From: Andalucia godoyi And28
Lineage: Eukaryota; Protista; Jakobida
Assembly: GCA_009859145.1 (NCBI GenBank)
Contig: VRVR01000048.1
Location: forward strand, 165,763-229,762
Length of the DNA stretch: 64,000 bases
Direction: 5' to 3'
A program made the position numbers and the translations under genes. Position 1 is the first letter of the stretch, and each line of letters starts with the position of its first letter. The notes beneath the pieces were generated by a model. The model saw only the letters and a list, made by a program, of their open reading frames with translations. It was not told the DNA's origin and did not search any database. Below, piece after piece: positions 4,334-64,000 of the stretch.

Positions 4334-4816
4334 TTCTCTCGTACTTCCAAATTCTCTCCGGTTCCTTTTCTTCTTCTCTTTCTTGGATGGTGTTTCTTCA
4401 GCACTATGCGTGTGTTGTAATGCAATTTCAGCTGCGAATTCTCTTTCTCCTCCTTTCTATTACAAACTCGACAACTCTTTTCTTCTTTCTTTTCTGATTG
4501 GTGAAATGAAACCGCAAAACTAAGAGAACATAAACAGAAGAAAGACGAAAAAGGAAAGGAAAGGAAAAAACAAAACACACAGAGTCCAAAGCTGTTGGTT
4601 GCTTTTTTTTTTGGTTTTTTTAGCGGTGCTCCCCAAACTCCCATCCAACGGTTGTCTCAAGTGATGCTGGATGCACCACCCCCCTGGCTTTTCCTGCCAG
4701 ATGAAGGGGTCGAGCGGGCAACTACAGCAGCAGCAATCAGCAAGTACTGTAACACAAGGGCATCGAGTATTTTGTCATGTTTCCGACCCACAAACCCGCA
4801 CCAGAGCCAACGGAAA

Positions 4817-4875
4817 AGAGAGAGAGAGAGAGAGAGAGAGGGGAGACGAAAGAAGAGAGAGAGAGAGAGAGAGAG
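4817..4875. repeat. (GA)n microsatellite
   Basis: Two (AG)n runs visible directly. Confidence 0.9.
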
Positions 4876-4916
4876 GGAAGCAATGAAACGATACGTCATC
4901 GCCGACGGAGGATCGG

Positions 4917-6032
4917 TTAAGAAGGAGGGTAGCTTTCGGCGCCGAGAAATTCGGCAAGGAAGCCGTTGCGGTCTGCGGCAGCATGGACGGTCGCTAGGGC
5001 TGCGGCGGCGACCCGCGCCTTTGCAGCCTCTGCGTCCTTTCGGATGAGCTTGACGGCGATGACGGCGGCTCTCGTGGCAGAGGCGACAGCAATGGAAAAG
5101 AGAGAAGCTGCAAGCGGCCCGCCAATGGGGAAGGACAGCAAAACCGAGCGCATGAGCCGCGCGGCAATCGATGCAGCGATCGCGATCGAGAGTCCCGAGG
5201 TGGAGTCGCGGACCCGGTCGCACGAATTGCTGCATCGCGACACGACATGGACAATGACGGACATCACAAAGAACCGCAACACCGCCAGCGCGAGGTCCAG
5301 CAGCGCCACTGCCGTCGATGCTGCAGTTCCCAGCGCATCCTCCGCCCGCTCCAGAAGGTCCGAAATCGATGCCACGGACGACATGGCACCTGCGGCTGAC
5401 GATGCTGGTTGCACCACCGCTGCCGCTGGTGAGGCAGAGAGCATCGCAGGAGTCGATTCCCAGATCCACGACCACCATCCCGACACATTCCTGCTGCCAT
5501 TGTTACTGCCATTGGTATAGCCATTCTTCAAGCTGCTGCAGCTGTAGGAGCTGTTGTTGCCATTCAAGGCGGCCAGTGGATGATGAGGAAGACTACAGTC
5601 GCCGTCAGCAAGATGCGCACGATGAGACTGCACGACGGCCGTGATGCGGCTCCACAGATCCGCGAACGAAATGGCAGGCGGGGTCGCGGCAGTCGGGAAT
5701 TCTCCTCGAAATGGAATGCTTGATGTGAGCGATGTGTCCGGCCACAGCTGCCGAAGGACCGAAACTGCCGCCGTACTCTGGCTCCTCGTTTTACTCTTGC
5801 CGTCGCCGCTACGGCCGCTGCTGCCATTCGCACTCGCCGTGGAGGCCGTGGTGGAGGCCGTGGTGGTGGTCGTCGTCGCTGAGGTTGTCGACATCTGCAT
5901 CAGAGGGGATGGACTGGATTGCGGCAGCGCATCTGGCCCCGCATTGGAAAACGGAGCAGCGGCCGTAGAAGCATCCAGATCGGTTGGGACCAGGTGCCGC
6001 AGCACACTTGCCAATCGCCAAACACCGCTCAT
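4917..6032 (-). CDS. Hypothetical protein (~371 aa) with Ser/Thr low-complexity N-half and Ala-rich hydrophobic C-terminal helices
   Basis: Long ORF; first ATG at 6032 (MSGVWRLASVLRHL), preceded by a pyrimidine-rich leader; no family recognised. Confidence 0.6.
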   Translation of the reverse strand: MSGVWRLASVLRHLVPTDLDASTAAAPFSNAGPDALPQSSPSPLMQMSTTSATTTTTTASTTASTASANGSSGRSGDGKSKTRSQSTAAVSVLRQLWPDTSLTSSIPFRGEFPTAATPPAISFADLWSRITAVVQSHRAHLADGDCSLPHHPLAALNGNNSSYSCSSLKNGYTNGSNNGSRNVSGWWSWIWESTPAMLSASPAAAVVQPASSAAGAMSSVASISDLLERAEDALGTAASTAVALLDLALAVLRFFVMSVIVHVVSRCSNSCDRVRDSTSGLSIAIAASIAARLMRSVLLSFPIGGPLAASLFSIAVASATRAAVIAVKLIRKDAEAAKARVAAAALATVHAAADRNGFLAEFLGAESYPPS

Positions 6033-6302
6033 TGCCCTTCCCGCCCTGTAGTGCCTCTGATTCTGCACATCACCAGAAAAAAAGAAGACGACGAAGAAAA
6101 AAATAAATAATAATAATGAAAATAAGAAAGAAAGAGGAAAGAAACAAACCAAACCAAAACAAAAAGAGGTTCAATTGGATGCTGCAATCGTGTGCTTCTG
6201 TCGACTGTAGAGCGTCGCTAAAAATCATTATTTATGTATATATTTTTTTACAGTAGATGGTGAGGAGTGATACTGTGAACGAGTGGAGTATCATGGAGGG
6301 TG

Positions 6303-8777
6303 CTATTCGACGCGGGTCTTGCGGTGCTGGAGCCAGAGGATGGCAAAGGCAGCCAGTCTGAGGGTGGTGCCGATTGCAAAGGCTGCGGCGATGTCGATGA
6401 GCTGTTGGCTGTGCTCTTGTTTGAATCCGACATTTGCGAGGCTTTGGCTGACATCGGAGCCCTGGGCGGCGTAGGACTGGACCTCGTGGACAAAGAGGAA
6501 CTCTCCAGTCCATCTCTGGAAGGACAGGCACCAGAGTGCGTAGAGGGGAGGAAACCGTTTAATCTGAGCGAGCGGAGGGTGGGTTCCGGCGCACACGGCA
6601 AGGATGACGGCACAGACGACGCCGACGATAGTTGTGCTGGACCGACGGACAAGCAACGAGACGAGGTATCCGACGCCGTACGCGCAGTAGTCGACGAGGA
6701 GACAAACGGCAAGGTATCCTGCAAAAGAAGCGTGTGGATCGAGGAACATGTAGAGCAAAGCAGCAAACAGCACGGCGTTGAAAACGAGAAACGGGATGTC
6801 AAGGAGCGTTTTGGCGATCACGTATGCGCTGCAGCGGACACGGGACGAGGCGGCTTCGCGGCGATATACGAGAATCTCGTCTCCAAAGGTCGACAATGAG
6901 GAGATGATGCCGCAGCCACCAAGAATCATCAGCACGAAAAAAATAATGTTCTCCAGCACACTCTGCTGCAGCGCATCGTGCATGCAGCGCTCGCGGATGA
7001 TCAACGGACACTTTTGGGCTTCGGACTCGGATACGGGCGGCGTGTAGAGCTGGAAGCCGCGGCTCGACGAAAACACGGATCCAAGACTAGCACCTGCCAA
7101 GACATGCATACTCGTGCTGATCACCAGCGACACTGTGTCTCGACTCTTCTGGATCGCTGCTCGGCGTCCAAACGCCACCATTTGACCAAAAAAGCTTCCA
7201 CTTGTCGTGCTCGTGCTGCTCGCTTTCATCACATCATGTGACGCAGCAGGTGGTGACTTGATGGTCACGTCGAGCGGAAATGCGGGGAAAAGGGGGGCTG
7301 TGGCGAGAACATCGAGGAAGAAGTCGGATGGGTTGCATCGATGTGGAATGTTGTAACCGAGAGTGGCGGTAAAGTACGCTAGTGACTCGCTGGCGGGACC
7401 AAAGTAAGCAGTGCGGCCCTTCTTGGCAAGTAGCAACACGGCATCGAGCATCTCGAAGATTTCAAATCGCGGCTGATGCAGCACTGCGACTACTGTTGTC
7501 TGCTTCCTACACCAGCCTTTACGCGGCGGCGACGACGACGACGACGAAGCGATTCTGCAGAGACACGCGATGATTTCCTTGGCGACCGTCGCGTCCAGTC
7601 CGGTGGTCGGTTCGTCGAGAATGAGGAGCGCAGGCTGCGCAACAAGCGCAATACCGATGCACACACGCTTCCGTTCGCCACCCGAGATCCCACGGTTCTC
7701 TGCATCTCCAACGACCGCATGGCGAACATCATACAATCCCAAGATCCGCAGGACGTTCGTCACCAGCATCTCCAGCCTCTGCGCATTGTGCACCTTTTTC
7801 GACTGTGACTGCGACTGCGACTGTGACTGTGACAGTGTTGGCGGAGATGACTGGGTGCGAGCCGCGTGCAAAAGGGTTTCCTTGACAGTGAGACAAGGGA
7901 TGAGGATGTCGGTTTGGGGCACGTACGAGATGGATCGACGATGGCTTGCGAGCGTTGTGGCGGATCCGTTGACGACGATTGAACCGCGAGAGACGCTGAC
8001 GGTTCCAAGAAGCGCGTTCAACAGCGTCGTTTTGCCACAGCCGGATGGCCCAAGAATCCCCGTACACTTCCCAGGCGCAAAGCGGCCGCTCGCACTCTCA
8101 ATCAGCACGCTCGATCCCAACCGACACTCTATCCCTTGAAACACCACATCAAGGCCACAGTCAATGCAATCCCCTCCAACTTCGTCATTCGCATCACCAA
8201 TCTCACAGTCCTCGTCCTCGGCATTGTCATTGTCATTGTCAAAGCCATGGTCATTATTTTCGCAAATGCTTCGAGCCGGATCTTGAATTTCCAAAATGTC
8301 GTCTGTTTGAACATGGGACTGAGAATGCGTGTGAGAGCGGTGGTGCGAACTGCGGCGGCGCTGGTTGCGTGCTTCTCGGCGAAGGTCTCGAATGGAGCGA
8401 AAGGCAAGAAATGCAAGAACAGCCGCGAAAAACGTGATGAACACGATTGCGAACGCGAGATAGAAGACCTGGTGTTCAGAGCCAGAAGGACAGTACGCAA
8501 GAAGCTGGCACTTGACAGGCTGCGCGGTGCCTTTTGGGCAAAAGTAACCTTGGGGACATCGCATTGGCGGCGTCGTAGGGGTTGGGCAGTACCATCCAGC
8601 CGGACACATGTGGGGGACTTGTCCGGAAAGTAAGGATCCGTACGCATCGATTGTGTACCCGGGGCAAAAGTATCCTTCGGTGCACAGCTCGTTGGTGTTG
8701 CAGATCTGCTGCTCCAGGCAGTCCAGTCCGCCAGGACAATTGTAAGACATGTTGACAGCTCGATTTGCTTCTCCCAC
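6303..8777 (-). CDS. ABCG (white-type) half transporter with N-terminal Cys-rich repeats
   Basis: Walker A GPSGCGKTT, signature ISGGERKRV, Walker B LLILDEPT and C-terminal ABC-2 TM helices. N-terminal CPxGYF/WCP repeats are followed by one TM. 5' end uncertain (ORF-track GTG at 8777; first ATG 8750). Confidence 0.9.
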   Translation of the reverse strand: MGEANRAVNMSYNCPGGLDCLEQQICNTNELCTEGYFCPGYTIDAYGSLLSGQVPHMCPAGWYCPTPTTPPMRCPQGYFCPKGTAQPVKCQLLAYCPSGSEHQVFYLAFAIVFITFFAAVLAFLAFRSIRDLRREARNQRRRSSHHRSHTHSQSHVQTDDILEIQDPARSICENNDHGFDNDNDNAEDEDCEIGDANDEVGGDCIDCGLDVVFQGIECRLGSSVLIESASGRFAPGKCTGILGPSGCGKTTLLNALLGTVSVSRGSIVVNGSATTLASHRRSISYVPQTDILIPCLTVKETLLHAARTQSSPPTLSQSQSQSQSQSKKVHNAQRLEMLVTNVLRILGLYDVRHAVVGDAENRGISGGERKRVCIGIALVAQPALLILDEPTTGLDATVAKEIIACLCRIASSSSSSPPRKGWCRKQTTVVAVLHQPRFEIFEMLDAVLLLAKKGRTAYFGPASESLAYFTATLGYNIPHRCNPSDFFLDVLATAPLFPAFPLDVTIKSPPAASHDVMKASSTSTTSGSFFGQMVAFGRRAAIQKSRDTVSLVISTSMHVLAGASLGSVFSSSRGFQLYTPPVSESEAQKCPLIIRERCMHDALQQSVLENIIFFVLMILGGCGIISSLSTFGDEILVYRREAASSRVRCSAYVIAKTLLDIPFLVFNAVLFAALLYMFLDPHASFAGYLAVCLLVDYCAYGVGYLVSLLVRRSSTTIVGVVCAVILAVCAGTHPPLAQIKRFPPLYALWCLSFQRWTGEFLFVHEVQSYAAQGSDVSQSLANVGFKQEHSQQLIDIAAAFAIGTTLRLAAFAILWLQHRKTRVE

Positions 8778-13615: not shown

Positions 13616-16600
13616 TAGTCATGGGGCTAACGTAACGCATGTTAGGCTAACGTGCGATGCTGGCCACAGTTAATCTCCGCTAACTGGATGAGAGTTGACG
13701 CTAACGCCAGGCCGCCAGGCGTCAGCATCGGCGACTTGACGCTGTCTCCCGCCAAAATTCGGCGGGAGCACAAACAACACAAATCCCCAAGAGGCCGAGA
13801 CCCTTATCTTTCGGTTTGGACATTTTGACCTTTCCAATTTCCATGATCATTCTTCTCTTTTCGAGAGCAGTCAAGTGTGTCTGTTTATCAAGATTTGGGT
13901 GTGCCTTGAATATTTCATGTCTAAAACTTCAGAATCTGTTGCTGATCTCAGGGAGAAGGCTCGTCAGATTTTAAAGAATCGCACTGTTTCTCAACGACAA
14001 ACTGAACCGTTCGCCTGGTCTTTGCCGATAGTGCGTTGGCATGACAAATACCCGCTGGTTCCAGTTGATACTTCTTCGCGCTCCTCTCCTGTTTGGAATT
14101 TTTTTGGTGTTTCCCCCGAAAATGATTCTGAAATGATCCGTGACAGCAAGGAACATCCAGAAGTTTGTTGTGCACTATGCGTTTTCAGAATGAGCGAGAA
14201 GCCGAAGACGTATCCGTATCTAAAACCGACAACGGACAAGCTTCGAGATCATTTAGAATCGAAACATCTTTCGGACTGGAAAGCTGTTTCCTCGCCGCAA
14301 ACAGGCGTCGTACCCTCTATCGGCAACTTCTTTGCCAAGCCTCTGACAAATAGTCGCAAAAAGGAACTCCGTGAAGCCATTGTTTATATGATCTGCCATG
14401 ATATTCAACCTTTGTCTGTTGTGGAGAACAAAGGTTTCAAGCAGCTCCTCGAAATGCTTGAGCCAAGATTTCAAATCCCGGATCGACAGCATCTGTCACA
14501 GACGTTGTTGCCTCAGATTGAAAAGGAGATTCATGATTTTGTCGGCGATTCTCTTTCACAGGAGGCATCAGGAGTTTCTCTGACGACAGATGGATGGTCG
14601 TCGAAAAATGGCCATCATTTTGTTGCAGTGACTGCGCATTTTGTGAATGAGGACTTCCAAATTGTGAATGTTCTGTTGAGATGCCTGCCCTCAGGGGAAT
14701 CCACGGACTCCTTGCGCACAAGCCTTTCCAAATGCCTGGAGGATTATGGAATTCGACATGATGCGATCGTTTCAGTAACGACTGATAACGCTGACGTGCA
14801 AGTGAACGCCGTTGTGAATGCCAGTCTCCCGCATCTTCGTTGTTTCATCCATACTTTGCAATTAGCAGTCCAAGGATCTCTTAATAACCGAGTGTGTGAT
14901 TTCGTCGTTGAAAAGGCCAAGAAAATAATGGAATTCTTCCATCGCAGCAATAAGGCAACTCATGAACTGGTAGAGTATCAAAAACGAGCCGGCATCGCCT
15001 CTCCTCTCACAATCAAAACTGAATGTAAGACGCGATGGAACTCTCTTCTGTATGCGCTTGAACGACTGCTGAAACTGAAAGACTTCATCGAACTTGTGTT
15101 GGTTGCGATCAAGCGTGAAGATCTACGGATGAATTCTGTTGAATGGTCGTTCATTGAATCGTTGCTTCCTGCGTTGCGTCCTTTCGAACAAGCCACCCGT
15201 TGGTTCTCCATGAATCAAGAAACGGTTGCAAGCCTCGTTATTCCGACTGTTAGGACGCTATTCAGTCTCTATCCCGATCACGATGAAAGAACGATCCGAG
15301 AGCTGCAAGCCAACATGAAGACAGTCGACAAAACTGACGTGATCGACGCATCCATCGCTCCACTGGAGTTTATTTTTGTGGATGAATCTCTGGACTACGT
15401 AGGACCAACTTCCAAAAAATCTCGCAAGAGAAAATCGCAGTGTCCGCAAACGGTTGAAGCAGAAGTTTCATCGGTGACTTCCGAGTTGTGCAATGCAGCA
15501 CTTTCTTCAATTCGTTTAGCTTTTGGAAATCACCTAAGGGCGCGTTTGAAAACGTTTCTGGATTCATCGATGCTAAAGATGTGCACTCTCCTCGACCCGC
15601 GAGTCAAAACAGGGTACATGCCATCGAGCGAAAGACGTGAGGTAGAACGGTTGTTATCTGATTTGTTGCGTCGAGAAGCAGGATTCGGGAATGATCCCGC
15701 TCCGTCTCCAAGGAACAATACTCCACACTCTCCATCCGATGCTTCTCAAAATTTCCGGCTCATAGGTCCGATATTTGAGGACGACGAGCATGTATCCAAA
15801 GATGCTTTTGAGTCAATTGTCACGTCTTATATGAATCATGCATGTCGTTGGCTTGGTGACGATCTTCCAACGTGGTCTGAAACGTGGAAATCGCTGCAGT
15901 CACTGTTTCCTCAAGTTGCTGCCATAGCCCGCAGATACGGAGGTGTTCAAGCATCCAGCGTGAGCAGTGAGCGTGTGTTCTCCATTTCTGGATACACAAT
16001 ATCTGACCGACGTCGCCGTCTTCATCCGACCACTGTCAACAGTATGATGCTTATCCACGCAAACTACGATTTTTGCAAGACGGACCGCAAAAGAAGGGCA
16101 GACGCTGGTTGCGAAGATGCGAGGCCTCCTAAACAGCCTGCAATTTCGCCTTCAGATCCCAGTCCATTGCATCGGAAATGAGTGAAGAGTATTTTCCAAG
16201 ACAGGTTTCAGTTATTTAATGAATGTGTGTTTTGCAACATCCTGTAATACGTCCAAAAGAGCAAGGAATGAAATCATTGGATTATTTAACATTCATGTCC
16301 GGAAGTATATATATCTGTGTACAATAATCGTATGGCGCGAAAAATGAGAACGTCGTCTATAATACCCCTTCGCATATATATTACGCAGGACCCACGCACG
16401 TCATCACGTTCTCACGATAGCTTGATCCGCGACAAACTGTAATTTGTTTTTTCAAGTGAGACATGAGAGCAACAAGTGGAGAAATGTGCGTGAAAATGCG
16501 TAAATCGTAACACATGTGTGGTTGCCCATGTATCTTCGTCCCTGCACAATGTCGACATCCTGATTTTAAATTCGTAAAGCAACAACCGGATCGATATTTT

Positions 16601-19032: not shown

Positions 19033-22000
19033 ATGCGAAGAATCGTGGTGGCTTGCGCACTTATTTTTTTGATCGTACACTTGTCCTGTGCTGCTCATAC
19101 GCTTGCAGGACTGTCGTGTTCAGCAGGCGAGTTTCTGGATAATTCCGCGGCACCGCCAAAGTGCGTGGGCTGTCCTCCGGGCTCCATCTCGCAGACTGTG
19201 AACGCGTCGTCTTGCACACCTTGCTCTCCCGGGTCGTTTTCACCCTCTCTTGGCTCCAGGAACTGCACGCTCTGTCCGCCGGGCAGTGTGGCGGCTGCCG
19301 GATCGCGGAATTGCACAGCCGGGCCAACGCTCGCGTCGCTCGTGTGGTCGACTGGAGCGCTGTCGCCAGAATTTTCGGCAAATGCGTTCGCGTATCGCTT
19401 GGCTGTGAGTGCACCAACGGCAAACGTGTCGGTGGTTCCGGTCGTAAGTGCGGCAGTCCGTGCAGTAGCTGTCATCAAGGTGAATGGGAGCATCGTGGAG
19501 TCTGGAAAGCGGTCGCGGGAGTTGTCGCTGACTGCGGGAGTGAACGTGTCGGTGCCCATTGAGATTTCGGTAAGCAGCGACATGTGGACCAGATACACCG
19601 TCACGATCGCTAGAGCGACTTTTGGAACAAGCAAGTTGACGGCGCTTGCAGTCTCCGCGGGCACCCTGACTCCCGTATTTTCTGCGTACGAATTCAGTTA
19701 TTCAGTTGCAAGTGTTCCACTGACAGCTGCGAGCGTGACGATCACTCCGACCGCACAGTCAGACTATGCAACAATCAAGGTCAACAACGTGATTGTCGCT
19801 TCTCGCAGTGCCTCGAGCCCACTGTTCCTGTCTGCAGCGAGAGCAATTACAGTAACCGTGAATGTTTCCGTACCGGGCACAGTGTGGACATCCTACACCG
19901 TCTTCCTCCCAAAACTTCAAGTTCTTGCCAACGAGCTCTTTAATCTCTCGGCGTCAGCCGGGACTTGGAATCCGCAGTTTTCTCCCAAGGTGTTTGTCTA
20001 TTCGCTGTCCGTTGCTCCGCAGGTTTCGAACATTACATTTTTACCGCTTGGGCTGACGTCTCGAGTGAATGTGACTGTGAATGGCACCAGAATCCCGCAT
20101 GGTAGTGCATCCCAGGCCGTGCCGCTGATGCTGAGCAACACTGTCGTCGTCAACATTTCCGTCGTGGACATTGGAGTGGCGCCAAAGTCATACATTGTCT
20201 CTGTGTTTCGGCAGCCAGCTCCGCGCAACGCAAGTCTTTCCAGACTCGAGCTCAGCGCAGGAGTTCTTTCTCCTGCTTTCAACTCATTGATTGTTGCTTA
20301 TACCGTTGTGATGCCAGTCGACACATCGAACATTACGATCCGACCAACATCGTTTAGTCTCAGTACGCGGATATGGGTGAACAATTCGTTGGTTGTGTCG
20401 GGTTCTCAGTCCGCGGAAATACCAGTTCCTTTTGGTCAACAAATGCTGGTAGTCGTGCGACTCCAAGACGGGGATCTGCTGCGTTCGTACAACCTCAGCA
20501 TCCTTCGTCCCGGTGTGACGGTGATCTATCCGCGAAGAGATACTTCCTTTGTCTCTGGTCAGTTCATCTATGTACGCTGGAACTCGCTGTTATTGTCGAA
20601 CACAGATGCTCTCCAAGTTGTGTTTTTCAGTCCTCAGAATCGTGCTGGCGACGTTGTTGCCTCTCGTGTGCCGTCCGGAATCACCAGCTTTCCGCTCCGC
20701 ATTCCTCTCGCGATCGTCCCCGGGTCGCAGTTTACAATTGGGGTGCGGTTGAACAACAACACCAGCACTCAGGGCCTTTCGACAGGAACATTTTCTGTCG
20801 TGGCGCAAAATCCCACAAAGTATGTTTATGTGAGCTCACCCGCTCCGTTTACTCGTTTTGGAATCTGGAATGGTCCGTACCGAGTCTCGTGGACAATCCT
20901 GAACTGCAATGCCCTTGACACCGTCTCAATATCTCTACGCGACACTCTGAACAATTTCGCACTGGTTCAGATGCTGGCGCAGTACGTTCCCGCGTCGCTG
21001 CTGTCTACAGAGCTGAGACTGACTTCCACAACCGGTATTGCTGTGAATTCGGATCGATATGAGATGCACATCACACTGGATGGGGCTGCCAGCTCGGATG
21101 CAGTACCAGTTTCGTTCGCATTCAGTGCCCCCATCGTTTCTTCATTGTCCATCTTGTACCCTCGAGACTCCACGAGCTGGGTAGTCGGCGACGTCTGGGG
21201 CGTCGAGTGGGCTTCCACTGGTCTGAGTGAGAGTGAGACAGTGTCCTTCTTTCTATATCTTCCAGCCAATGCCTCCCTGCTGTGGCGACTGTCGACCCCA
21301 TCTTTGGTGTTCGCTTCCGTCGGCTATCAGGGCCTCAGAGTCACTCAGGGGGGGTCTGTTGCGTTGGGCGGTCCGTACCGCCTCCGAATGGTTGGTTCCT
21401 CCGGCGTGACAGCAGATGCCTTGGCTGATGTGTTCCTTGTCAGTTCTGCCACGCTGCCGTCTGCTACCATTATTTCGGCGTCTCCCGAGTCAACATCGTC
21501 CGTTTCTGTTCTCTTGGGATCTGCAGCGGGTGTCCTGGCATCGTCCAAGATTGTCGAGCTGTTTCGGAATGCTCTCTGTGCAGGCACTGCGTTGTCGAGT
21601 CAGATTCTAGGGCCATCCACATGGACAGCAAGGTTTCGCAATTTATCATCGGGTACCACACATTCCGTACGTGCAAGGTACACTTCTATTTCCGGCGGCA
21701 CTTCTCCTCTTTCAAGTTGTGTGGCCGTTTCGACGAATCTGGCCAGCAGTTTCTTTCCGAGCATTCGACTGTTGCATCCGATCGCGGGTCACTCGTACTT
21801 TTACACGGAGACGTCCTCCGTCATTCAGGCGCAGTCGATGGATATTCGCGTGCTCGTTTCTGGCCCCCAAAGCGTGTACACCGTCTCTGCGATGTTGCAG
21901 ACAGTGTCAGGAAGGGCGGTGCGCACATTGTTCGCAACATGTTCTACATCCTCCGAGTGTCTGATCGGGTCCGTGAAGTGGATGAATGACGTTTCGCTGA

Positions 22001-33348: not shown

Positions 33349-34486
33349 ATGAGCTCCAACATCAAGGCACTCCAGATTACCGAAGATGATGCCCAGCGCA
33401 TGCTTGCATCGCAGGTCCACCTTGGATCGAAGAACGTGAACCCGGACATGGCACGCTACATCTACTCTCGCCGCGGAGATGGAGTGCACGTCTTCCACCT
33501 TGCGCGTACTTGGGAGAAGCTCTTGCTTGCCGCCCGCATCATTGTCGCCATCGAGAACCCCGCCGAAATCGCAGTTGTCTCGTCGCGTGCGTACGGCCAG
33601 CGTGCAATCCTGAAGTTCGCAGCACACACTGGTGCCACCGCCATCACCGGCCGCTTCACCCCGGGTACCTTCACGAATCAGATCCAGAAGCGATTCGTCG
33701 AGCCCCGTCTGCTGATCGTCACTGATCCTCGTACTGACCACCAGGTATGTTTTTCGCCTTTCGCCTTTCTCCTTTCTCCTTTCGGCTTTATGCCTTTTCT
33801 TTCTTTTTCTTCCAATCCCGCTTTTTTCTTCTTTTGATCGAGATGCAGCTCTTTTCAGGGAGAGAGATTGGGGGAAATAATGTGATGCATCCAATTTTGC
33901 ACGTTAGGGCGATTTCTCCATGAGCACTACACCAAGATCTCTGATTTGTTTCCCGTTCTCTCCTTTTGTTGCATTCATTTCTCTCGCGCTGTCTTTTCTG
34001 TTGACTGCTGAAGAAAAAAGTATTGAACATGTTTACTGATTCTTTTTTTTAAAAATCATTGTTTGCTTCTGTTCTTAGCCGATCACTGAAGCCTCGTACT
34101 GCAACATCCCGACCATTGCCTTTGCCGATGCAGACTCGCCATTGCGCTTTGTCGACGTTGCGATCCCGTGCAACAACAAGGGTAAGTTCTCCATTGCACT
34201 TGTCTACTGGCTCCTTGCCCGTGAGGTTCTCCGTCTCCGAGGACAGATCCTCCGCTCCGTTCCTTGGGACGTGAAGGTTGATCTCTTCTTCTACCGTGAT
34301 CCGGAGGAGGCCGAGGCACAGTCCAAGAAGGCCATTGAGGGCCAGACTGCCGAGGAACAGCTCGAGGAGGAGGCCGCCGCCGCCGCCGATGAGTGGGCAG
34401 ACAAGGTTGGGGCCTCGGAATGGGCTGAGCCTGAGGGTGTTGCCGGAGAATCGTGGGCAAACGACGAGACTGCAGCCCAGAACTAA
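33349..34486 (+). CDS. RPSA: 40S ribosomal protein uS2 (SA); exons 33349-33744 and 34079-34486
   Basis: [50 protein letters not shown] spliced in frame to [14 protein letters not shown]...IPCNNKG. Confidence 0.97.
33745..34078 (+). other. Spliceosomal intron of RPSA (334 nt) hosting a snoRNA
   Basis: GTATGT donor at 33745, TACTGAT branch-like motif near 34037, TTAG acceptor at 34078; splicing restores the conserved protein. Confidence 0.95.
33872..33954 (+). ncRNA. Intronic box C/D snoRNA with two rRNA guides (U24-like D guide; snR72-like D' guide)
   Basis: 9-bp terminal stem GGGAAATAA/TTGTTTCCC (one G-U); C box GTGATGC 33882-33888; D box CTGA 33941-33944. Guide CACCAAGATCT is complementary to LSU AGAUCUUGGUG; guide TTTGCACGTTAG is complementary to LSU CUGACGUGCAAA (one G-U), ahead of a putative D' GCGA. 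Confidence 0.85.
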
Positions 34487-39319: not shown

Positions 39320-40942
39320 ATGGCAGCGGAACCAGATAGAGTAGCGTCCAAGCACGTTCGATATCCGAATTCTGATGTTCCCTTTATATACTGGCGCGGA
39401 GTGTCGCAGACGAGGTATGTGAACCGCAACGACATTTTGTTTAATCGACCTGGGACGTTTATTCTGAAGCTGAAGGATCCGTACGGGCAGTATCAGACGC
39501 GGATGGTGTATGAAGGCGGTGTGAAGGTATGGGAGGCTGGCGGCCGGTGGGTGTTCCGGCAGCAGCAGGCAGTTCGTGAGGGGACGTGGAAGGACTCGTT
39601 GCGGAATGCAGAACTGTTCATGACAAGTGGTGGGACCGAGGGGAACGCTGCTACTGGTGAGCGACTGTACTTCTTATCGCAAATCATGGTTCCTCATGGA
39701 CAGGGGGTGCTGAAGAGGGCGGACGGGAGTGTGGTGTACGAGGGTTCCTGGAAAGACGGCAATCGCGATGGGTCTGGAGACGGGGAGTACGAGGACGGGA
39801 GGTACTTTGGGGAGTGGAGTGGGGGGTCCAAGGACGGAGACGGGGTGTATACTGCGCGGACGGGGGAGACAGTGTCGGGTAAGTGGGTGGAGGACTTGGT
39901 GTTTGATGCACAGGGGACCTTGCGGAAGAAGGACGGCGAAGTCTGGAAAGGCGAGTGGAGGTCTGCGTACTTTAAAGGTATTGTCGTGTATGCTTCCGGA
40001 GACAAGTACGAAGGCGAGGTGACGCCCCCGCGATGGATTCACGCTGCATCGGGTTTGCAAGCAAGTCCAAATGCTATTGGACTGGGTGCGGCTGGACAGA
40101 GTGCAGGGAGTGGAAACTCTGCGGCTGCGCTGGTTCTTTTGCAACAGCAGATCCAGGGTCTGCAACTGAGCGCGCTGAACAATGCGGCAAGCGGCTCTGG
40201 TGGCGGTGCAGGTGGGTCTTCGCAGAGTGCCGTGATTACTCAGGCCATGAGCGGCGGGCTGAATCCGTCCGAGGATGAATCAGAGTTGTTGCAGATGACT
40301 CGGTCGATTTGGGACCGGGTCTTGATTCCAGGGTCGCGGCAAGGGCCTGGAAAGGAGACGCTTGTGACGGGAGGAACATATGTTGGGTACTGGCAAGACG
40401 GGAAGCGTCATGGGTTTGGCACATTCCAGTGGCCCGATAAGAACACCGACCAGCTGTTCTACAGCTTCGGCAACCTGCTGCACATGCGGTCCGCAGCATA
40501 TGCGGGTGGAGGAAGTGGTGGAGGCGCATCATCAGGACCAGGATCAGGGGCTGGAGACTCCGGGGTGAACTCGGCGACGGTCGATGTCCTGTCGAGAGAA
40601 ATGGAGGTGTTGCGGGCCGAGAAGAAGCACTATGCAGAGGAGGCACAGTCGATGATGTCGAAGCACCGTGAGAATCTGGAGCGCATGGCTGCGCTTGAGC
40701 GGGATCTGTTGGTGATGCAGGCGGAAAGAGACACGCTTCGAAAACAGCTCGATGAAGAAACGACAAAGAGATCCTCGGAAGAGCACAGACGAAAGGCTGC
40801 CGAGGTGTTTATTGAGCGGCTCGATGAGGAAATGAAGAATCTCCAGCAGGTGCAGCAGCGACGAATCCAGGCGCGGCTGGACGAAGCCAGACGAAGCATG
40901 GACCTCTCCAACGGCTCGAGTTATTCGTTCCAGCCCGACTAG
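39320..40942 (+). CDS. MORN-repeat protein with C-terminal coiled coil
   Basis: YEGSWKDGNRDGSG, YFGEWSGGSKDGDG, YVGYWQDGKRHGFG repeats; ATG 39320. Confidence 0.85.
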   Translation: MAAEPDRVASKHVRYPNSDVPFIYWRGVSQTRYVNRNDILFNRPGTFILKLKDPYGQYQTRMVYEGGVKVWEAGGRWVFRQQQAVREGTWKDSLRNAELFMTSGGTEGNAATGERLYFLSQIMVPHGQGVLKRADGSVVYEGSWKDGNRDGSGDGEYEDGRYFGEWSGGSKDGDGVYTARTGETVSGKWVEDLVFDAQGTLRKKDGEVWKGEWRSAYFKGIVVYASGDKYEGEVTPPRWIHAASGLQASPNAIGLGAAGQSAGSGNSAAALVLLQQQIQGLQLSALNNAASGSGGGAGGSSQSAVITQAMSGGLNPSEDESELLQMTRSIWDRVLIPGSRQGPGKETLVTGGTYVGYWQDGKRHGFGTFQWPDKNTDQLFYSFGNLLHMRSAAYAGGGSGGGASSGPGSGAGDSGVNSATVDVLSREMEVLRAEKKHYAEEAQSMMSKHRENLERMAALERDLLVMQAERDTLRKQLDEETTKRSSEEHRRKAAEVFIERLDEEMKNLQQVQQRRIQARLDEARRSMDLSNGSSYSFQPD

Positions 40943-61373: not shown

Positions 61374-64000
61374 TTACTTCACCAAGAACGTTTGCATCTT
61401 TCCTTTCCCCTTGATATCGACGTCTCCGCGTTCTTCACAGTCGACTGAGGACCACACCAATTCATACGTACTACGTGTGATCTGAATTCTTCCCGGGACT
61501 CCACTTGACTCCATCCGGGAAGCAATATTGACCGCATCGCCAATGCAATCATAGACAAATTTGCTTTTTCCAATGACGGCTCCGATGACTGGACCGGAGT
61601 TGACGCCGGCACGTATTTCTATGCTGGTAGAGTGCTGCAAGTTGTACTGCTTGACCATGTCGATCACGTCCTTTAAAAAGGAAATCATAGCAACAGCGTG
61701 GTCGTGTTTGCGTTCGAACAGACCGGCGGCCCCAAAAAAGCAATCTCCGATGAGCTTGATCTTTTCAATCTTGTGTTTTGTGCACAAAATATCGATGTTT
61801 GAGAAAATGTCACTCAGCATCTCAACCAAATCGCGAGGTGTCATGTGCGACGACAATTCCGTAAACTTGACAATGTCGACAAAACAAAGACTGACGCATT
61901 GATACTGGTCATATATGGGATGTTCCCCGTCTTTTAGACGTGTGGCAATACTGCGGGGCAGTATGTTCAGCAACAAGTCGTCGGATCGTTGACGTTCTGT
62001 ACGAAGCAACAGCTCAGTCTTCTCTCCCACAGTCAAATCACGCACAAATGCTGCGTAAAAAATCTCGTCCTTGATCTTATACGACGACAGCGATAGCTGG
62101 ACAGGGAACGTCTGCTGATCTGGCAGCATTCCATCCGCACGCAAGGACAGCGTGCCTTTCTTCCGGACGGCTTCGTCCAGTGCTTTTGGAATGTCGTACG
62201 GGAAATTGTCCGAGAAGGAACGCAAGTTGCACACAAGAGTGTCAAAAGATCGCCCGATGACATTTCCGTTTTCCGAGCATCTGAATATCTGATTGGCAGA
62301 CGGAGAAGCGTGTTCAACAAATCCTTTCGAGTTCAGCTCCAATATGCCGTCCACTGAAGCCGCAAGAACCGACCGTGTCCTCAGCTCTGCTTCCTCCACG
62401 GCATCTTGGAACATGTTCTCACTCATTCGTGTTCCGTGAGTGCGCACAAAAGATTCCAATGCGGGAACCTTCTCGACAACCGGAACAGGTATCATCGTTA
62501 GCATCTTCCGATACTGGTGAATTTCCTTCCACAAATGCGCTTGAAGGAACTGGGAGACGACAAGAGCTACCGCGATGACACCCACACATACTCCGAATAC
62601 TGGACCGATGGAACTCAATGCAAACGTTACTGTACTGGGAGTTTCGCTCACAAAAATCGCCTTCGACTGTGTCAGAAGAGGTCCCAAATAAAGAGACTCG
62701 ATGTTGAGCAAATCGCGATAGGTTTGCAACTGGAATGTGAGTTGCGAATCCGGAAGCAGCAAAAGGACATTGGCCAAGTTTAGGTAGGCGGACATGATTC
62801 CATCAAGACCGAGACATGCTACGTTGAGCGTATCGTTGCATCGTCGGTCAAACAGCAGACTATCTTGTGCTGCAGAATGACCAACGGATGGTGGTGTTTC
62901 AAACTTTGCTGATCCGTACTTGACAGCATCGTGAATTTCGGACAGCTGCTGAATTCCTGCACTCAGCTGAGGTCGCATGCTCGCCCTGCCTCCGTTCAGC
63001 AGCCGAGCATCATCCCGAATTAGTTCCGTTGCCAAGTAGTTGATTCTTTGCGAAAACGACCGTCGAGACCCTGCATAGTTGATCTGTGCAGACTTCGAGT
63101 ATGATGAAAAACTTGCAGCCAAGCAAAAACCGCACATGACGATGATCAGCGAGCAAATCACAATGATGAATGTCAGGAAAATTAAAGTCACTCGTGTGGT
63201 GGCAGACGTGGAAGAAGCCGCTGCACCACGTAACAGAATATCCGCACTAGAGCCCTTCTTGCCATTGCCCGCATGAATTGCAGTGCGACATTTTTGAACA
63301 ATCGTGGAAACATCGGTCTTTGGAACTAGCAAAAACAGTCGCGAGATGGCTTTCCGCTCGCGAAGAATTGATCTCATGGCCCGAACGTAGAGTAGCAAAA
63401 TCAACAAGATGGGCAGGCCAACCGCAAGCGCAGCAAGTACCCACAAGGTGATTCGATCTTGAGCAGCAGAGTCACGATAATAAGCGACGTAAGCATAGAC
63501 AAGACTCCACATACCCGTGAGCAAAGAATATGGACCGTTTTCAACAATAGAACGGAAATCTGTGTTGTTCCCGGTCCACACGTTGCTGGAAAAGAATGTA
63601 GCGTTGAACGATGCCACATTCCTAATGCTTCGTACGTAGGAGTTGTACATTTCCCACCGCGATTGCATGACAACAGTGTGATCTTGTGTTGAAGCGCTCC
63701 ACAGATAGAAAGGAACGTCTCTCTTTTGCCATTCTGCTATCAACGAGTCGACGCCGAAAGTGCTCGCAAACAGAGAAGAAGCTGCTGTTTCGATATCGGT
63801 AGCAGTTTGTGTTAACTTTGTAATTGATGCGGAGAACGAGGTTCCCGTGTACCAGCCTTTGGCAACCGCTTCGCAAAGCGCAGTCATGTACGCCGCATTC
63901 ACGGACGGCATACGGGTCCCTCCTGCATTGGCAACCATGTCCCCCTTATCCGACCGTATCGTCGATTTTCCAATGACATACACTGTGATGCAAATCGCAA
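61374..64000 (-). CDS. Multi-TM PAS-domain class III adenylyl cyclase, 5'-truncated by window end
   Basis: Frame open to 64000; several TM helices, NarX/PilJ-like QINYAGSRRSFSQR, PAS (ASVDGILELN...SANQIF), cyclase FVDIVKFT, KIKLIGDCF, YDCIGDAVNIASRMES. Confidence 0.9.
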   Translation of the reverse strand, partial: AICITVYVIGKSTIRSDKGDMVANAGGTRMPSVNAAYMTALCEAVAKGWYTGTSFSASITKLTQTATDIETAASSLFASTFGVDSLIAEWQKRDVPFYLWSASTQDHTVVMQSRWEMYNSYVRSIRNVASFNATFFSSNVWTGNNTDFRSIVENGPYSLLTGMWSLVYAYVAYYRDSAAQDRITLWVLAALAVGLPILLILLLYVRAMRSILRERKAISRLFLLVPKTDVSTIVQKCRTAIHAGNGKKGSSADILLRGAAASSTSATTRVTLIFLTFIIVICSLIIVMCGFCLAASFSSYSKSAQINYAGSRRSFSQRINYLATELIRDDARLLNGGRASMRPQLSAGIQQLSEIHDAVKYGSAKFETPPSVGHSAAQDSLLFDRRCNDTLNVACLGLDGIMSAYLNLANVLLLLPDSQLTFQLQTYRDLLNIESLYLGPLLTQSKAIFVSETPSTVTFALSSIGPVFGVCVGVIAVALVVSQFLQAHLWKEIHQYRKMLTMIPVPVVEKVPALESFVRTHGTRMSENMFQDAVEEAELRTRSVLAASVDGILELNSKGFVEHASPSANQIFRCSENGNVIGRSFDTLVCNLRSFSDNFPYDIPKALDEAVRKKGTLSLRADGMLPDQQTFPVQLSLSSYKIKDEIFYAAFVRDLTVGEKTELLLRTERQRSDDLLLNILPRSIATRLKDGEHPIYDQYQCVSLCFVDIVKFTELSSHMTPRDLVEMLSDIFSNIDILCTKHKIEKIKLIGDCFFGAAGLFERKHDHAVAMISFLKDVIDMVKQYNLQHSTSIEIRAGVNSGPVIGAVIGKSKFVYDCIGDAVNIASRMESSGVPGRIQITRSTYELVWSSVDCEERGDVDIKGKGKMQTFLVK

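Follow-up and report, generated by a model that had tools for sequence, protein, structure and literature searches.

The intron of the gene for the ribosomal protein uS2 (RPSA) of Andalucia godoyi very probably carries a box C/D snoRNA of the U24 (SNORD24) family, whose D′ guide has come to target A876 of the large-subunit (LSU) rRNA (yeast numbering) in place of the A1449/G1450 region, next to a D guide for C1437. The snoRNA lies in a 64-kb stretch of nuclear DNA of this jakobid, and this whole stretch, as analysed here, is referred to as the window hereafter. The original prediction had claimed that the RPSA intron contains a box C/D snoRNA with two guides, and the boxes, the stem, the two guides and a match to a U24 profile, all read from the sequence, argue for this claim. 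The features are collected in Table 1.

Table 1. Features of the uS2 (RPSA) gene and of the predicted snoRNA in its intron (positions in the window)
Feature	Position	Strand	Basis
uS2/RPSA exon 1 (host gene)	33349–33744	+	identity of the spliced protein with NCBI uS2
uS2/RPSA host intron, 334 nt, GT..AG	33745–34078	+	splicing there restores the uS2 reading frame
Predicted box C/D snoRNA, U24 type, 83 nt with the full terminal stem counted	33872–33954	+	boxes, stem, two guides, profile match
Terminal stem, 5′ arm GGGAAATAA	33872–33880	+	pairs with 33946–33954
C box GUGAUGC	33882–33888	+	6 of 7 positions agree with RUGAUGA
D′ antisense element TTTGCACGTTAG + G	33896–33908	+	complementary to yeast 25S 873–884
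D′ box GCGA, non-canonical NNGA	33909–33912	+	sequence
C′ box AUGAGCA	33920–33926	+	resembles AUGAGAC of CAGA-type classical U24; the profile alignment pairs the two
D antisense element CACCAAGATCT	33930–33940	+	complementary to 25S 1433–1443
D box CUGA	33941–33944	+	sequence
Terminal stem, 3′ arm TTGTTTCCC	33946–33954	+	pairs with 33872–33880
uS2/RPSA exon 2 including stop codon	34079–34486	+	identity of the spliced protein with NCBI uS2

When the two exons are joined, they encode a protein of 267 aa with 100% identity to the NCBI entry "uS2 (rpSA) [Andalucia godoyi]". The introns of A. godoyi are rare (12% of the genes examined) and have a mean length of 151 bp, with a range of 55–756 (genome paper, PMC7050145). 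The length given originally for the uS2 intron was correct, whereas its description as much longer than another intron of the window (95 nt) has to be tempered: it is only about twice the mean. The element is located in the middle of the intron, with 127 nt separating it from the 5′ splice site and 124 nt from the 3′ one. The intron's 3′ half was scanned for a second snoRNA, and neither a C box nor an ACA motif was found there; the TACTGAT near 34041 is, from its sequence, more likely the branch site. The nearest uS2 proteins (80% and 69% identity) are encoded on transcript-like JGI contigs of about 0.9–1.1 kb, which are intron-less.

The terminal C and D boxes are joined by a short stem, as is characteristic of box C/D snoRNAs. 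The stem GGGAAATAA/TTGTTTCCC consists of 9 bp, namely, 8 Watson-Crick pairs and one T-G pair, and is present in both the MFE and the centroid folds; it was thus recovered as first described, together with the C box GTGATGC and the D box CTGA. The fold of the whole element is not more stable than those of its shuffles (z = +1.2); an unremarkable fold stability is normal for C/D snoRNAs, but it lends the reading no support. The D antisense element directly abuts the D box. The internal motifs are less regular: GCGA deviates from CUGA at two positions, and the C′ box AUGAGCA is degenerate. Both retain the GA dinucleotides, and their degeneracy is comparable to that in classical U24 genes. As judged from these letters, the C′/D′ motif could form two sheared G-A pairs together with the pairs G33924–C33910 and C33925–G33909.

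Two further features were seen in the 5′ part of the intron. One is a tandem repeat at 33752–33789 (+), in which the 7-nt unit TTTCGCC occurs in 5.4 copies that match at 90%, embedded in a long pyrimidine-rich tract that makes up the first ~125 nt of the intron. Another is that the CT-rich CTTCCAATCCC upstream of the snoRNA can be paired with GGGAGAGAGATTGGGGG, which overlaps the start of the 5′ stem arm (33803–33877, +); the same region gave a weak hairpin-like Rfam match (MIR6426, E = 2.7). This pairing could be a competitor of the terminal stem of the snoRNA, or it could be due to chance.

The guides were examined against a yeast-type 25S rRNA of 3396 nt, taken from positions 4601–7996 of the contig L012, which also provided the 18S and 5.8S rRNAs. 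This contig comes from a collection of bacterial and archaeal genomes that was scanned with a eukaryote-specific LSU motif and that yielded at least 120 contaminating eukaryotic rDNA contigs (L001–L120). Among the matches listed, L012, L013, L045 and L068 carry a gapless 25S of 3396 nt. They were compared with a draft yeast 25S of 3396 nt, in which 37 of the 37 published Nm positions are on the right base. When compared with this draft base by base, L012, L045 and L068 have 4–5 substituted positions, and the BLAST identity of L013 to it is that of L012 and L045. On the L012 sequence, the rRNA strings and the numbering on which the original prediction had relied were found to be right: A876 lies within GGTTCTGACGTGCAAATCG and C1437 within GCAGATCTTGG.

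The D guide CACCAAGATCT forms 11 Watson-Crick pairs out of 11 with 25S 1433–1443, and its +5 base, G33936, stands opposite C1437; the assignment of this guide to yeast Cm1437 therefore held, and in the literature this position is the U24 site. The D′ guide TTTGCACGTTAG (33896–33907) forms 12 bp (1 G-U) with 25S 873–884, and the pairing on yeast extends to 15 bp with 3 G-U (870–884). The original description of these 12 nt as standing before D′ needs a small correction, since a single G33908 intervenes between the 12-mer and GCGA, but the +5 count is unaffected: the fifth base 5′ of GCGA is T33904, and it stands opposite A876, the snR72 site. As measured on the yeast-type 25S, both guides thus have an antisense stretch of at least 10 nt and obey the fifth-base rule. 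The energies of the two duplexes are −20.6 and −21.3 kcal/mol, values reached by none of 1000 shuffles in either case.

Conservation of both targets in the LSU rRNA of A. godoyi is presumed from other eukaryotes. The A876 target CTGACGTGCAAA is found in almost all of the 81 listed eukaryotic LSU sequences that extend far enough, and one of the twelve A876-target contexts listed has GTGACG instead. The motif AGATCTTGGTG occurs in 120 of the 120 listed LSU loci, which had been selected by that motif. The Cm1437 guide is U24 in yeast, human, Arabidopsis, Dictyostelium (CD19) and Plasmodium (PFS18, intronic), and the Am876 guides are snR72 in yeast, AtsnoR72Y in Arabidopsis (Am885) and CD5 in Neurospora (PMC8583080, PMC3511168, PMC5824354 for snR72/AtsnoR72Y). 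As originally claimed, the two sites are thus served by separate snoRNAs in yeast.

A third complementarity was found at 33914–33925 (+), where the D′–C′ linker and the C′ box together (TTCTCCATGAGC) can pair perfectly, over 12 bp, with yeast 25S 2663–2674. It was rejected as a third guide and is probably a coincidence, because the target lies in an rRNA stem that is variable among eukaryotes and the motif occurs in only 8 of the 120 listed LSU loci.

The family assignment is based on three observations: the match to a U24 profile, SNORD24 as the best Rfam family, and the shared box types. As for Rfam, a search of the whole window at the gathering score gave no match, and when E values of up to 10 were allowed for the intron, only noise was obtained (Phe_leader, MIR6426, bxd_4, snoR41, Ysr209 and sR52), none of it on the element. 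When the element alone was compared with 4227 Rfam families, the best one was SNORD24 (RF00069), with a local match to CACCAAGAUCgCUGA (15.1 bits, E = 3.1). This score is below the gathering score of 41 bits. In a control with eight classical U24 loci from metagenomes, the SNORD24 model called 5 at the gathering score and missed 3; hence, the silence of Rfam on the godoyi element is weak evidence. The D antisense element is identical to positions 58–68 of the Rfam SNORD24 consensus and to P. falciparum PFS18, and the element matches positions 58–72 of the model save the variable base before CUGA.

A set of classical U24 genes was collected by scanning metagenome contigs for the A1449-region guide TATTTGCTA, followed by 12–42 nt and then ACCAAGATCNCTGA, which gave at least 119 stretches. 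An nhmmer profile built from 76 diverse genes of this set has a single significant match in the window, at 33881–33946 (E = 1.1e-4; hmm positions 8–78 of 84). The alignment spans the element from the C box to the D box, and the guide and boxes supply much of the score. The C boxes of the classical genes are GTGATGT (28), ATGATGT (18), ATGATGC (15) and GTGATGC (3), among others, so that the last base is often not A; their D′ boxes are of the NNGA type (TTGA, CAGA, TCGA) and obey the +5 rule for A1449. In one large group the C′ box AUGAGAC is followed by CUA, and the godoyi counterpart is AUGAGCA-CUA.

It was also seen that the D′ and C′ boxes of the classical genes occur in matched types: CAGA with UGAGAC, TCGA with UGACGA, and TTGA with UGACGA or UGAUGA. 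This pattern, obtained from a crude parse of the contigs L125–L204 and further loci, suggests co-variation in the internal K-loop.

Of the two guides expected of U24, the godoyi element has the one to LSU AGAUCUUGGUG, with the C1437-equivalent at +5. The second one, to the A1449/G1450/C1451 region, was not found: the 5′ spacer does not pair with 25S 1444–1457 over 9 bp or more (at most 6 bp by reading), and pairs with 870–884 instead. One might argue that this pairing is idle, that is, that the element is a real U24 snoRNA in which only the D guide for C1437 works and GCGA and AUGAGCA form no working C′/D′ motif. The deviation of both boxes from the consensus speaks for this alternative, and so does PFS18, which counts as a U24 homologue with the C1437-equivalent as its only assigned site, its 5′ half being A-rich with no obvious rRNA guide in our reading. 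Furthermore, the list of Dictyostelium methylations lacks an A876-equivalent, which indicates that the A876 site is not universal. Nevertheless, we regard the alternative as improbable, for three reasons. One is that the spacer gives 12–15 bp in the exact +5 register, before an NNGA box, and on a nucleotide that is methylated in yeast and Arabidopsis. Another is that, when the 5′ spacer was shuffled, only 44 of 3000 sequences (1.5%) gave a 12-bp duplex with at most one G-U anywhere in the 18S, 5.8S and 25S rRNAs; for a random spacer that also strikes a known site in register, the chance is estimated to be about 1e-4. The last is that equally degenerate NNGA D′ boxes serve A1449 in the classical U24 genes.

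The preferred reading, a U24-family snoRNA with two working guides, was also weighed against the background of the window. On both strands, 24 pairs of a C box and a CTGA are enclosed by a terminal stem of at least 5 bp, and only the pair at 33872–33954 has an rRNA antisense of 10 nt or more. The window contains 439 CTGA sites, and by our arithmetic about 0.01 11-mer matches to a known Nm site would be expected per window. Together with the shuffled spacers and duplexes, this figure bears out the earlier judgement that two +5 matches are unlikely by chance, and the joint occurrence of the stem, the boxes and both in-register guides, as seen in the letters, is far beyond chance. The element might instead resemble a snoRNA by chance, or be the decayed pseudogene of one within a long intron, and yield no stable RNA. 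This would agree with the lack of an Rfam match at the threshold, but it is hardly credible, since a 9-bp stem that is still intact, the C and D boxes, two guides in register with known Nm sites and the U24 profile match are found together in the middle of an intron of a highly expressed ribosomal protein gene in an intron-poor genome, whereas the stray 10–11-mers of the window lie in coding sequence and have no boxes or stems.

When the whole window was scanned permissively for +5 matches to the 37 yeast 25S Nm sites, 24 were obtained, as compared with about 33 per shuffle, and they are therefore regarded as noise. The candidates that were inspected and rejected are as follows: an 11-mer for A876 at 14789(−) and matches for U2921/G2922 at 20387/20899(+), all in coding-like sequence without boxes; a CTGA-anchored 11-mer to 18S 606–616 at 40283(−), in coding sequence, whose +5 position G610 is no known site and of which about one is expected by chance; and the second nhmmer match at 63399–63367(−), TTTGCTACTCT..., with E = 0.99 and in coding sequence without boxes. 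Isolated rRNA complements of 10–14 nt, around known or other sites, and U24-like fragments, without C/D boxes or stems, thus occur in coding-looking DNA at a chance-level number.

The element can be compared with three known systems. U24 (SNORD24, snR24) shares with it the D-box guide ...CACCAAGAUCNCUGA for the C1437-equivalent, an intronic gene in a host with a translation-related role, an NNGA D′ box, a C box often without the final A, and a UGAGAC-like C′ box. U24 is hosted by ASC1 in yeast and by RPL7A in human, while the host here is uS2. The other differences are that the D′ guide of the godoyi element aims at A876 and not at A1449/G1450 (or human C2352), that the element lacks the small hairpin between D′ and C′ of classical U24, and that it stays under the Rfam gathering score. 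The guide to A1449/G1450/C1451 is carried by U24 in yeast, plants and Dictyostelium, and by a second snoRNA in S. pombe, Neurospora and human (A2350) (PMC2780460); the two functions of U24 thus reside in one RNA in budding yeast and plants, and in two RNAs in S. pombe, Neurospora and mammals.

The second system comprises snR72, AtsnoR72Y and Nc CD5, which are likewise antisense to CUGACGUGCAA with A876 (At A885, Nc A856) at +5; the likeness shown is that of the guide. In these three the A876 guide stands before box D, whereas in the godoyi element it stands before D′ and is paired with a U24 guide. Elsewhere it occurs alone (snR72), with a U2421 guide (Nc CD5) or with an A817 guide (Taphrinomycotina), and no Rfam model is given for SnR72 (PMC3511168). 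The third system is PFS18, which is intron-encoded, like the godoyi element, and has the identical 3′ end CACCAAGATCTCTGA.

From established snoRNP biology, the following course of events would be expected. The host pre-mRNA would be spliced and the lariat debranched, and exonucleases would trim the intron down to the 9-bp terminal stem, shielded by the C/D kink-turn proteins (Snu13, Nop56, Nop58 and fibrillarin), leaving an RNA of about 75–83 nt. The C/D and C′/D′ motifs would position one fibrillarin each. The guide before D would then pair with LSU AGAUCUUGGUG, and the C opposite its fifth nucleotide, the equivalent of yeast C1437 and the universal U24 site, would be 2′-O-methylated; likewise, the guide before the degenerate D′ would pair with CUGACGUGCAAA and direct methylation of the A876-equivalent. 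Our understanding of how box C/D snoRNAs work is unchanged by this, and the element is mechanistically ordinary.

When metagenome contigs were scanned for the godoyi type of arrangement (TGCACGTYAG, 8–38 nt, then ACCAAGATCNCTGA), no match was obtained, whereas the classical U24 pairing had given at least 119 stretches. This result fits the lineage-specific recombination of guides that had been suggested; however, what is recombined is better described as a U24 with a switched D′ guide than as two unrelated snoRNAs freely joined. The separation and recombination of guides and the mobility of host introns are well documented for snoRNAs (PMC2780460, PMC5824354, PMC3511168), and the new guide combination and the new host gene are therefore expected behaviour and involve no new principle. 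Canzler et al. described target switches of snoRNAs and inferred a gain of the A876 guide at the root of Ascomycota, and Hoeppner and Poole dated U24 and its sites to LECA, with intronic host positions being unstable.

As to how the A876 guide arose, in-place retargeting of the ancestral U24 D′ guide in the jakobid lineage is conceivable, though we hold it to be doubtful. The two targets have GCAAAU in common (UAGCAAAUAU at 1447–1456 and GUGCAAAUCG at 879–888), and the profile aligns godoyi TTTTGC-AC with classical TATTTGCTAC; consequently, a few substitutions, together with a shift of D′ by 4 nt, could have sufficed for the methylation to pass from A1449 to A876. In that case, Am876 of jakobids would be convergent with that of Ascomycota and plants, and A. 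godoyi would either lack Am1449 or have it guided by a separate snoRNA.

No mention of a snoRNA for jakobids was found in the searchable literature, which included the A. godoyi genome paper and its supplements (PMC7050145); as far as this literature goes, the element would accordingly be a first annotated methylation guide for a deep-branching Discoba lineage. The predicted snoRNA speaks for an origin of U24 and its C1437 site by the time of LECA. It would also make jakobids the third distant lineage with a predicted guide for the A876-equivalent, after Ascomycota and plants, which is relevant to the question of an ancestral origin or repeated gains of this methylation. Moreover, it would be another clean case of guide separation and recombination, and would offer a plausible reason why a genome poor in introns has retained one in a gene for a ribosomal protein.

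Finally, some observations were made on the sequence collections themselves. The rDNA contigs mentioned above (at least 120) come from genomes and MAGs labelled as prokaryotic, and represent contamination of public assemblies; the full S. cerevisiae-type 25S (L012, L013, L045 and L068) was found in the assemblies of Planomonospora parontospora JCM 3093, Cellulomonas telluris, Collinsella aerofaciens and Burkholderia sp. H160. In the metagenomes, one contig (L181, 2003–2680) has three tandem copies of U24 within about 700 nt, and two others (L125, 3492–4217; L137, 2686–3409) carry a snoR1–snoR12–SNORD24 cluster.
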